From Octopus sinensis (lineage: Eukaryota), in NCBI RefSeq assembly GCF_006345805.1, contig NC_043011.1, positions 63,500,464-63,564,463 on the forward strand: 64,000 bases of DNA, read 5' to 3'. Within the stretch, counting starts at the first letter, position 1, and the number at the start of each line of letters is the position of its first letter. The notes beneath the pieces are model-generated. The model saw nothing but the letters and a program-made list of their open reading frames with translations. It had not been told where the DNA came from and ran no database searches. Shown piece by piece: positions 13,782 to 16,700 of this stretch. Position numbers and translations under genes: made by a program.

Positions 13782-16700
13782 GACGGGTTTCTTTCTCTTT
13801 CCATCTACATAATCCACTAACAATGCTTTGGTCAGCCCGAGGCTATAGTTGTAGACACTTGCCCAAGCTGCCACACAGTGGGATTGAACTCGGAACCATG
13901 TGCTTTGTCAGCAATCTACTTACCACTCAGCCATTCCTAAGCCCGTATATTTTCTTCACCTCCACCACTACCAACGACACAATCAACACTAAGAATAAGA
14001 ATAATACGTACAAGCATTCTAAAGTATATGTTGGTCTTGGAATGTTAGCTTTCCTTATATCCATGCAATTTCCTTCGGCGAATCTGTGGCACTCGGAATC
14101 CACAGCATCAGCTAAAATATTTATTTATTGAGTTATTAATAATTAGTGATGCATATACTGGGTGTGTAATCATTATGTTTAAAACAGAAAGCGAAAACAA
14201 AACGAAAATACCGAAGAGTTAACATTGAGCTAAATTCGGATTCCTATATTCTCAGTAAGCAATTATAAATGTTTGACGAATGATATCAACGTTGTTCTGC
14301 TTCCGTTATAACTTCACATGTGACGATGTGGTACAATTATTTGGTGATTCTTTACTGCAAAATATCTGGAAGGTGAACATTTTTAATCATTTGTCATATT
14401 CTTTTATTCTGTTATTTGTTTAAGTCATTTGAGTTCACCCATGCCGGAGCAGCGCCTTTAGTCGAGCAAACCGAACCCTGGAGGAGAATAAGATGAGAGG
14501 GAAGAACGAGATGAGAAAAAATAGAAGCAATCAGGGAAGAAAAGGAAAATATATCCAAGTGTGCCAACCAAAGCCGAGGCCGTCAGAGCAGAGGCCGAAG
14601 AAAGCGTCAAAAAGAGTGAAAGAAGAGAGGCAATTAGCAGCCATCAACACACAAGATACAGAATTAATGAGAGAACTAAAGAAGAATAAAAAAACACAAA
14701 CGGGAAATTACAAAAATTATGACATTTATGATGGAGATCTAAAAAGTCAGTCCACCAAAGGCCGAGGCCGTCAGAGCAGAGGCCGAAGATAGCGTCAAAA
14801 GAGTGGAAAGAAGAGAGGCAAATTGCAGCCATCAACCCACAAGATACAGAATTAATGAGGAGAACTAAAGAGAATAAAAAAACCAAACGGGAAATTACAA
14901 AATTATGACATTTATGATGGAGATCTAAAAAGTCAGTCAATCCGAAAAACAATTCAGGCAACTGTCGGAACATGTGGATGGTGATTGGCCGAGGCCCGTC
15001 AGAGCAGGGCCGAAGACAAGCGTCAAAAAAGAGTGAAAGAGAGAGCATTAGCAGCCATCACCACACAGATACAGAATTAAGTGAGAGCACTAAAGAGAAT
15101 AAAAAAACACAAACGGGAAATTACAAAAATTATGACATTTATGATGGAGATCTAAAAAGTCAGTCAATCCGGAAAAACAAATTCAGGCAAACTGTCGGAA
15201 CAATGTGGATGGATATTCATTGTAGTTTGAATGATTTACCGGAACCCATCCCTCGATCGAAAACATGAAGCGATAGAGACTCCCCCATCCACGTTATACC
15301 ACGAAGAGTTTAAAAACCAATGGCGAGTCATTATGGCTATTCGCATCGGTTGTGTAAATGTACGTGGCCTGATGTCGAGCTGGAATCAAGGACTCTTCCT
15401 AAATGATATCAGGTCTCCTGATTTGGATGTAATTCTTGCTACAGAAACCAGTTTGAAAGGAACAAGAGATCTATTCCCTCTGCTGAACGGCTACGAGAAA
15501 TACGTTTCTCCGTGTCGGTCGACAAGTGGGGACGAGGTGTTGGTCCTATTAAAAAGAAACAGTGTTTTGGAGAAAAGGTTGATTTCTTTTCTGATCCAGA
15601 TGGTAGGCTGTGCATTTTGAACTTGAATTTCAATTGTGTCTAGACTATCAGGTTGGTGGTAATATATGCACCTAATATTTCTAATCAAAAAGTGAATATT
15701 TGCGTGACCTAGAGAAGTTTGCTTGGAGATTTTAATACAATCTGCGATGAACGCGTGGATTATGTTGGCTCGACATCCGATACAATATGTCCTGACTTCG
15801 GGGATCCACTAAGCTATTTTCAGCTAGCAGATCCATATAGGCTGGTCATGGTCTAACAGCCACGAGTCGTTCAGAACGTAGATATATAGGATACTAATGA
15901 GAAAAGTAGTAAAAGCATAGTTAAGCGTCCACCGTTTTAACAAATCAGCTACAGTGACCACAAGTTGGTTACTTGTAAGACATGTAAGACGCTCTATTTC
16001 CTGTCAAAGTCCGTTAAAGGGAGGATTAGATATGCTCTGACTGTTGATGCGCAAATATGCGCTGAGTTTGAGGCATCTCTGGATTCTTCGGGATGGTGAA
16101 CGGTTGTGGTCTCTGATGGCGAAACAGATGTTTTCCTTTTTCGCTAGATTCTGTGGGCGGGAAGCCTGGTACTTTCGTAGATCATGTTTGAGTGAGAGGA
16201 ATACAGAGTGTCGCAAGCCATTCCGTCGCCCGGAGTAATGCAAGCGTTGGGGGTTGTACAGGATTTTTCTGTTGAGGGTGGGTTGTGGCTGAATGTGACG
16301 ATGACCTGGGTGAGACTCTGGATCTCGGGTCTGTTCAGCCTGTTTATTCGTACTTTTGGTCTGATGTTGCTGGATAACTTCCAAATGTCTTTGGCCTGGG
16401 AATGTTACAGAAATGTGTTGCCCGTTCGAGATAAACTTGCGAGACATGGCCAATGCGACACGCCGACCTGCCCAAGATGTGGGCAATGCAGGGAAACTGT
16501 CCCAAACTCCGTTGTCCTGTGTCCGGACTGAGTCAATAATGATAATCGAGCCACCGGGCTTTCTATCAAATAAAGTTAAGAATTGTCTTCTCACCTAAGT
16601 AGCGATAGAGAAATAGGTGGTATGAAAAGCAAAGATGAGATGAATAATAATGACAGGCAGTTTCATCTCTGGCCTTGCTTTACACAGGAAATTTACTTTT

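Follow-up and report, generated by a model that had tools for sequence, protein, structure and literature searches.

Hypervariable mature-peptide exons between more conserved introns in a tandem array of predicted six-cysteine genes of Octopus sinensis

The genes of snake-venom PLA2 and three-finger toxins are tandem duplicates in which the coding parts outpace the introns and untranslated regions (UTRs), with nonsynonymous change (dN) about equal to or above synonymous change (dS). In conopeptides, synonymous change is raised in the mature region. Conotoxin genes have three exons; within a superfamily, their introns are conserved, and they contain many simple repeats (PMC3862624). The mussel family MgCRP-I combines a conserved pre-pro region with a hypervariable mature peptide containing six invariant cysteines (PMC4558851). 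Here, we analyzed a stretch of 64,000 nucleotides (nt) from Octopus sinensis, referred to as the window (RefSeq assembly GCF_006345805.1, contig NC_043011.1, forward strand; C15:63500464–63564463), which consists of eukaryotic DNA with low GC content, short interspersed elements (SINEs), and microsatellites. The window holds two copies, c9 and c10, of a predicted three-exon gene on the minus strand. A sequence-only reading had proposed that the mature-peptide exons of these copies, and in particular exon 2 of c9 (window positions 14012–14111, minus strand), diverge faster than the surrounding introns. The analysis shows that this signature is real, but a formal dN/dS > 1 is not established.

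Exon 2 of c9 and its paralog in c10 (36660–36759, minus strand) differ at 45 of 100 nt and have 9 of 32 residues in common. No insertion or deletion separates them, and the three cysteines are in register. The adjacent intron is more similar than the exon, with 82% identity over 263 nt (14103–14363 versus 36751–37013), and it includes the longest identical intron block, which is 43 nt in length (14291–14333 and 36941–36983). The conserved 3′ end of intron 1, which contains this block, spans 14112–14375 in c9 and 36760–37013 in c10 (minus strand in both cases). Directly 3′ of the last exon, a conserved 3′ flank or UTR block of c9 (10442–10571, minus strand) matches c10 (29077–29206) at 129 of 130 nt. 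The signal exons are conserved as well: exon 1 of c9 (17502–17538, minus strand) differs from that of c10 (39396–39432, minus strand) at 7 of 37 nt, and exon 1 is identical in three other paralogs. The exon counts, both block lengths, and the signal-exon conservation described in the sequence-only reading were all recovered.

The genome search covered the 2.72-Gb assembly of 13,516 contigs. A DNA search with an intron-plus-exon stretch as the query found ten copies at C15:63.365–63.537 Mb and one fragment on C1, and profile searches with the two exon alignments found exactly nine intact genes (c0–c3, c5, and c7–c10; C15, about 63.33–63.54 Mb). These form a tandem array of unannotated three-exon genes, and two further copies are dead. 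Exon 1 (37 nt) occurs once per gene behind a conserved 5′ flank. In c9, as in the family, it consists of ATG, 12 codons of the hydrophobic signal-peptide core, and one base, followed by a GTAAGT donor (phase 1); a scan for open reading frames (ORFs) and donors together with the nine-copy alignment indicated that ATG, core, and donor are kept in every intact copy. The 5′ flank of c9 (17539–17760, minus strand) is conserved among the nine aligned paralogs, with p-distances of 0.08–0.25 between clades. A TATA-like motif lies some 75 nt upstream of the ATG, and the flank probably comprises the promoter and the 5′ UTR. Exon 2 (100 nt) encodes the end of the signal peptide and Cys1–Cys3. In c9, it lies between a TTTTAG acceptor and a GTACGT donor, with a phase-1 start and a phase-2 end, and has 32 whole codons: about four that complete the signal peptide, followed by the hypervariable mature segment, in which the cysteine spacing is C-x7-C-x16-C. 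Its splice sites, frame, and cysteines are kept in the nine paralogs without any insertion or deletion.

Exon 3 (10668–10797 in c9 and 29324–29429 in c10, minus strand) belongs to a downstream block of 2.8 kb that is conserved, as is its acceptor, (C/T)AG (CAG in c9). It encodes Cys4–Cys6 and about ten hydrophobic residues before the stop codon. The three-cysteine ORF is intact in all nine copies; the spacing is C-x8-C-x11-C in c9 and C-x7-C-x11-C in the remaining eight. The hydrophobic tail is intact in six of the nine copies, truncated in c2 and c10 (an earlier TGA leaves four residues in c10), and lost in c7. All six cysteines are invariant across the nine genes, three per mature exon. The predicted precursor is about 80–90 residues long, with a signal peptide, a six-cysteine mature domain of about 60 residues, and a short hydrophobic C-terminal tail, and its product would be secreted or attached to the surface. 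The tail is presumed to be translated because a similar hydrophobic ending follows Cys6 in a much-diverged sister cluster (see below). A fourth exon, spliced from a conserved GGTAAT after Cys6, was considered and rejected as the main model, as the sister cluster continues the same ORF into its hydrophobic ending. The shared blocks in the window's first 7.7 kb were also considered as gene copies and rejected, being transposon fragments and the flank of the gene located just before the window. About 30 kb past the last intact gene, a weak exon-3-like match (C15:63302399–63302506; E = 3.4, open frame of 75 amino acids) may be a more diverged tenth member of the family.

The array resembles conotoxin genes in its short exons and long introns with abundant simple repeats, its conserved signal and intron ends, and its hypervariable mature region on a cysteine framework. 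Its evolutionary pattern also agrees with that of the snake toxin genes and of MgCRP-I. In contrast to conotoxins, the octopus genes lack a pro-region exon, their mature domain is split over two exons and followed by a hydrophobic C-terminal tail, and the copies form a single tandem array in which gene conversion is directly evident. Snake toxins have an unrelated fold and come from an unrelated lineage, and their genes are proven to be expressed as toxins, whereas the octopus genes are known from genomic sequence. MgCRP-I and the myticins of mussels differ in cysteine spacing and gene structure, with no detected sequence similarity, and MgCRP-I is known from transcripts.

Across the nine paralogs, the mean p-distance is 0.40–0.42 in the mature part of exon 2 and 0.21–0.22 in the 5′ flank and the 3′ end of intron 1. 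Exon 2 is more diverged than these two segments in 35 of 36 and 25 of 28 pairs, respectively, and its alignment has no gap columns, compared with 205 of 355 in the adjacent intron. Exon 1 differs by 0–35% among the copies. In a 3.3-kb alignment, the 50-column window with the lowest conservation is that of exon 3 (mean pairwise identity of 0.62, against 0.71–0.90 for the flanks); in fixed-window alignments, this contrast is weaker, blurred because some copies carry insertions or deletions in the flanks. Two features by which accelerated-exon families are recognized, namely a conserved signal with a hypervariable mature region on fixed cysteines, and introns and UTRs more conserved than this region, were found in the array. 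Instead of starting at the splice site, the divergence sets in after the first 10–12 nt or so of exon 2, where signal cleavage is predicted. The conserved first 10–12 nt encode the small-residue end of the signal peptide. A boundary at the cleavage site points to selection or to conversion limited by divergence, rather than to a structural boundary in the DNA.

The clearest case is the pair c5 and c8, which are recent inverted duplicates, collinear over about 11 kb. Their noncoding divergence outside the microsatellite is 197 of 8170 positions (2.4%), and it is slightly raised, to 4–7%, for a few hundred bases around exon 3. Exon 1 is identical (0/37), but exons 2 and 3 differ at 16 of 100 and 16 of 94 positions; the mature exons together thus differ at 32 of 194 (16.5%), an excess over the noncoding divergence with a binomial P of 1.5e-17. 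About 28 of the changes are nonsynonymous and about three synonymous (nd = 28.2 and sd = 2.8; dN/dS ratio, ω, of 2.8), and the ratio of the nonsynonymous proportion (pN) to the noncoding divergence is 7.7. The change lies almost completely on one side. For exons 2 and 3, the branch lengths are 0.20 and 0.18 in c8 versus 0.010 and 0.000 in c5, with 0.002–0.036 for the flanking introns. At the 32 differing sites, c8 has a state unique among the paralogs at 16 and c5 at two. The genome searches with the exon profiles found no donor for the c8 exons elsewhere in the assembly. A burst of mostly nonsynonymous change in c8 after the 11-kb duplication is demonstrable.

The trees of the gene segments form a strong mosaic. 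Maximum-likelihood (ML) trees of four noncoding segments disagree among themselves, and they also contradict the exon trees, with 80–100% bootstrap support. In trees of the 5′ flank, exon 1, and intron 1, c7 joins c5 and c8 with 100% bootstrap support, but both mature exons place it with c9. The copy c2 has an intron-1 end within 0.4–3% of c5, c7, and c8, an intron 2 that clusters with c10 (100%), and an exon 2 that falls with c0 and c1. The flanks of c10 cluster with c0 and c1. Three old clades, {c0, c1, c2, c10}, {c3, c5, c8}, and {c7, c9}, appear in both exon trees. Judging from these trees, gene conversion is clearly at work and contributes strongly to the pattern; the conflict among the noncoding segments means that it explains a good part of the intron similarity. 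The comparison with conotoxin and snake-venom genes in the sequence-only reading therefore holds in part. The accelerated-exon pattern extends to nine paralogs and includes the burst in c8, but much of the similarity of the introns comes from conversion. Conversion alone is insufficient because the change in the c8 exons is asymmetric.

Here, we propose an account that combines gene conversion of the noncoding and signal parts with episodic diversifying change in the mature code, which we consider moderately probable. Conversion or unequal recombination among the tandem copies would repeatedly homogenize the promoter, signal exon, introns, and 3′ flank, and the conversion tracts would end where the mature-peptide code begins. 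The tracts may stop there because conversions that would overwrite a diverged peptide are selected against, or because the divergence itself blocks the tract. The mature-peptide codons would then change in diversifying episodes on a fixed disulfide scaffold, of which c8 is the clearest example. We infer that selection, not mutational bias, drives the burst in c8. The product is most likely a ligand or effector acting against a partner that itself changes, for example microbes, prey, or receptors (conspecific or chemosensory), and would be under diversifying selection.

Several observations weigh against this account, and the first of them concern the rates. The sequence-only reading had named dN/dS > 1 outside the cysteine codons as support, and the array shows this only weakly. 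With the cysteine codons included, ML gave ω = 1.45 in exon 2 and ω = 1.07 in exon 3, and neither value is significantly higher than 1 (2ΔlnL versus ω = 1 of 2.3 and 0.06), and even in the c5/c8 pair the excess of dN over dS is marginal (Fisher P = 0.08). The mean synonymous proportion (pS), 0.35, nearly equals the mean pN, 0.37, and both are far above the intron divergence. The raised pS, several times the divergence of the introns, counts against selection because selection at the protein level does not predict a synonymous excess. Acceleration is also missing in the young pair c0 and c1, which differ by 2.6% in the exons and 3.9% in noncoding DNA; the acceleration is episodic. Concerted evolution alone could produce such values: the exons would show the true old age of the copies, with drift at roughly the neutral rate on the cysteine scaffold, whereas conversion would keep everything else young, and no positive selection would be needed. 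The strongly supported mosaic of the noncoding trees and the three old clades shared by both exon trees are consistent with it, as are the rates just given. The c5/c8 pair, however, would require a conversion of about 11 kb that skipped exactly two patches of about 90 nt. The exon change in this pair is wholly one-sided and 10:1 nonsynonymous, and the c8 states are genome-unique. The boundary at the signal-cleavage site recurs in several independent mosaics, which itself requires selection against converting the mature code. On balance, we regard concerted evolution without positive selection as an unlikely explanation, though one of some weight.

The nature of the changes in c8 is a further point on the opposing side. 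They include five consecutive bases and two dinucleotides, and such clusters can mimic positive selection, so ω should not be taken at face value. The c8 exon sequence is that of the assembly. Clusters of this kind would be expected if a local process such as error-prone repair or template switching raised the mutation rate of the mature exons, with selection filtering out only stop codons and cysteine losses. The raised synonymous divergence and the noncoding divergence of 4–7% around exon 3 of c5 and c8 fit such mutagenesis, which may be tied to the trinucleotide microsatellite after the exon-2 donor: an (ATT)n, (CTT)n, or (GTT)n array lies within a few bases of this donor in the aligned intact copies. 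The effect would nevertheless have to be inconstant. Since the same duplication, c5 has gained nearly no exon changes and c8 about 30, and the exons of c0 and c1 are no faster than their introns. The sharp boundary is at the signal-cleavage site and not at a DNA feature, and no such mechanism is known in cephalopods. Exon-targeted mutagenesis appears improbable on these grounds. A more speculative possibility, to which we give a low probability, is that the array is a cephalopod diversity-generating locus, in which a targeted mutational or recombinational mechanism, and not ordinary selection on point mutations, makes new secreted or surface ligands. This reading would draw on the microsatellites beside the hypervariable exons, the confinement of conversion to noncoding DNA, and the clustered multi-base replacements. 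If it is true, the locus would serve self/nonself, microbial, or chemotactile recognition.

The transcript data add to the opposing points. No RNA run contained the c9 exon-3 region. Four sets of presumed RNA contigs, with tissues given in coded form, were compared with the stretch from exon 1 to exon 2 of c7, which was chosen for a 5′ end identical in c5, c7, and c8 and for having no long repeats. SINE contigs but no exon contigs were found on c7, an absence that proves little. One 190-nt contig from the RNA sets crosses the intron-1/exon-2 boundary of a paralog unspliced, and represents unspliced RNA or DNA carry-over; the contig result supports neither expression nor silence. No canonical poly(A) signal was found within 500 nt of the stop codon. 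The exon boundaries and the 3′ end are predicted by comparison and not from cDNA, and because no transcript evidence was obtained, the case for the gene model rests on comparative evidence. Pseudogenes or mispredicted ORFs under relaxed constraint would also give an ω near 1, no RNA support, and no protein match in public databases, and two copies, c4 and c6, are truly dead. These dead copies (C15:63425883–63426106 and 63455905–63456138) differ from the others: they retain the intron-1 end, but their exon 2 is unrecognizable, and c6 has CT in place of GT at the exon-1 donor. The nine intact copies, at about 40% divergence in the mature code, keep the ATG, the signal core, four splice sites, the frame, all six cysteines, and stop-free exons. 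In a neutral simulation, the probability of acquiring no stop codon and keeping six cysteines was 0.008 per lineage at 20% change. Moreover, relaxation cannot produce exon divergence above the neutral rate of the introns. Decay of the nine copies is thus very unlikely.

The relatives of the family were searched for with exon-by-exon queries of 32–41 positions, a length that limits sensitivity. Pfam gave nothing meaningful for the exon 2 and exon 3 peptides, including no toxin family and no match to a conotoxin model in sequence or cysteine framework. For the RGM N-terminal domain, the exon peptides had no Pfam match at E ≤ 10, and the single-exon queries had no PDB sequence match. A word-index protein search with ORF-extended references for exon 2 and the exon 3 alignment found no match. 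When the exon-3 profile was run with HMMER against 1.84 billion proteins, one match was returned, a repetitive junk ORF. The PDB sequence search found no match, and the ESM Atlas gave nothing above 0.76. A literature search found no earlier description of such genes in octopus. No link to venom was found: no expression was detected in the RNA sets and no toxin family matched in Pfam.

A cluster located 247 kb further along the same chromosome is probably a distant sister group. Its minus-strand last-exon ORFs have the spacing C-x7-C-x11-C, an F-[HQ] motif after Cys5, and a hydrophobic end of about ten residues. Like the array, the cluster consists of tandem, unannotated small genes with a signal exon, six cysteines, and a hydrophobic tail. 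An hhalign comparison placed the three cysteines in register (probability 66%, E = 5.7e-5), with a bias from the picking of ORFs from weak HMM hits. The sequence identity is only about 22%, and the exon profiles do not reach this cluster at E ≤ 0.01 in the genome search.

Other features of the array and the window were also observed. A trinucleotide microsatellite, (ATT)n, (CTT)n, or (GTT)n, follows the exon-2 donor by a few bases in most intact copies (window 13950–14011 and 36590–36659; loci L002–L006 and L011). Its length reaches several hundred bases in c5 and c8; c9 has a short, degenerate version, and L008, the neighbor of c8, has none. The microsatellite may mark a hotspot of recombination or slippage beside the hypervariable exon. 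A 393-nt piece at window 36600–36992, covering exon 2 of c10 plus 233 nt from intron 1 and 60 nt from intron 2, is 100% identical to C1:48564535–48564927, where no other part of the gene surrounds it. Its presence there reflects an assembly chimera or else a very recent transposition of the fragment. Intron 1 of c9 contains a tandem repeat of about 200–227 nt at 14567–15212 (two copies at 14760–15212 by TRF, and a third, related copy from 14567 by self-BLAST) and a LINE-like insertion at 15231–16600, the ORFs of which resemble an endonuclease/reverse transcriptase. Both are lineage-specific and not found in c10. Upstream of genes, blocks with mutual identities of 93–95% occur three times in the window (22169–25132, 39856–42621, and 44370–45326), and they are probably a recently active transposon and not a component of the gene unit. 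Two arms of about 860 nt, 94% identical, form an inverted repeat with 300 nt between them (56265–57122 versus 57417–58270). A trinucleotide microsatellite of about 2 kb at 5500–7600 is very AT-rich (GC 0.14). On the minus strand at 60820–60856, a signal-exon-like motif at chance level (ATG, 12 mostly hydrophobic codons, and GTAAGT) has no matching exon 2 or 3 nearby.

The array adds an unannotated and apparently octopus-restricted family of small, disulfide-rich proteins, predicted to be secreted, to the few animal families with conserved introns and hypervariable exons. It also indicates that secreted genes with micro-exons, such as these, are still missing from cephalopod gene sets. Within a single genome, the 11-kb duplicate provides a natural experiment, as it is 97.6% identical outside the exons and has one base in six changed in the mature exons. 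The locus allows conversion, selection, and local mutation bias to be examined together, and it bears on the long-running question of selection versus targeted mutagenesis.

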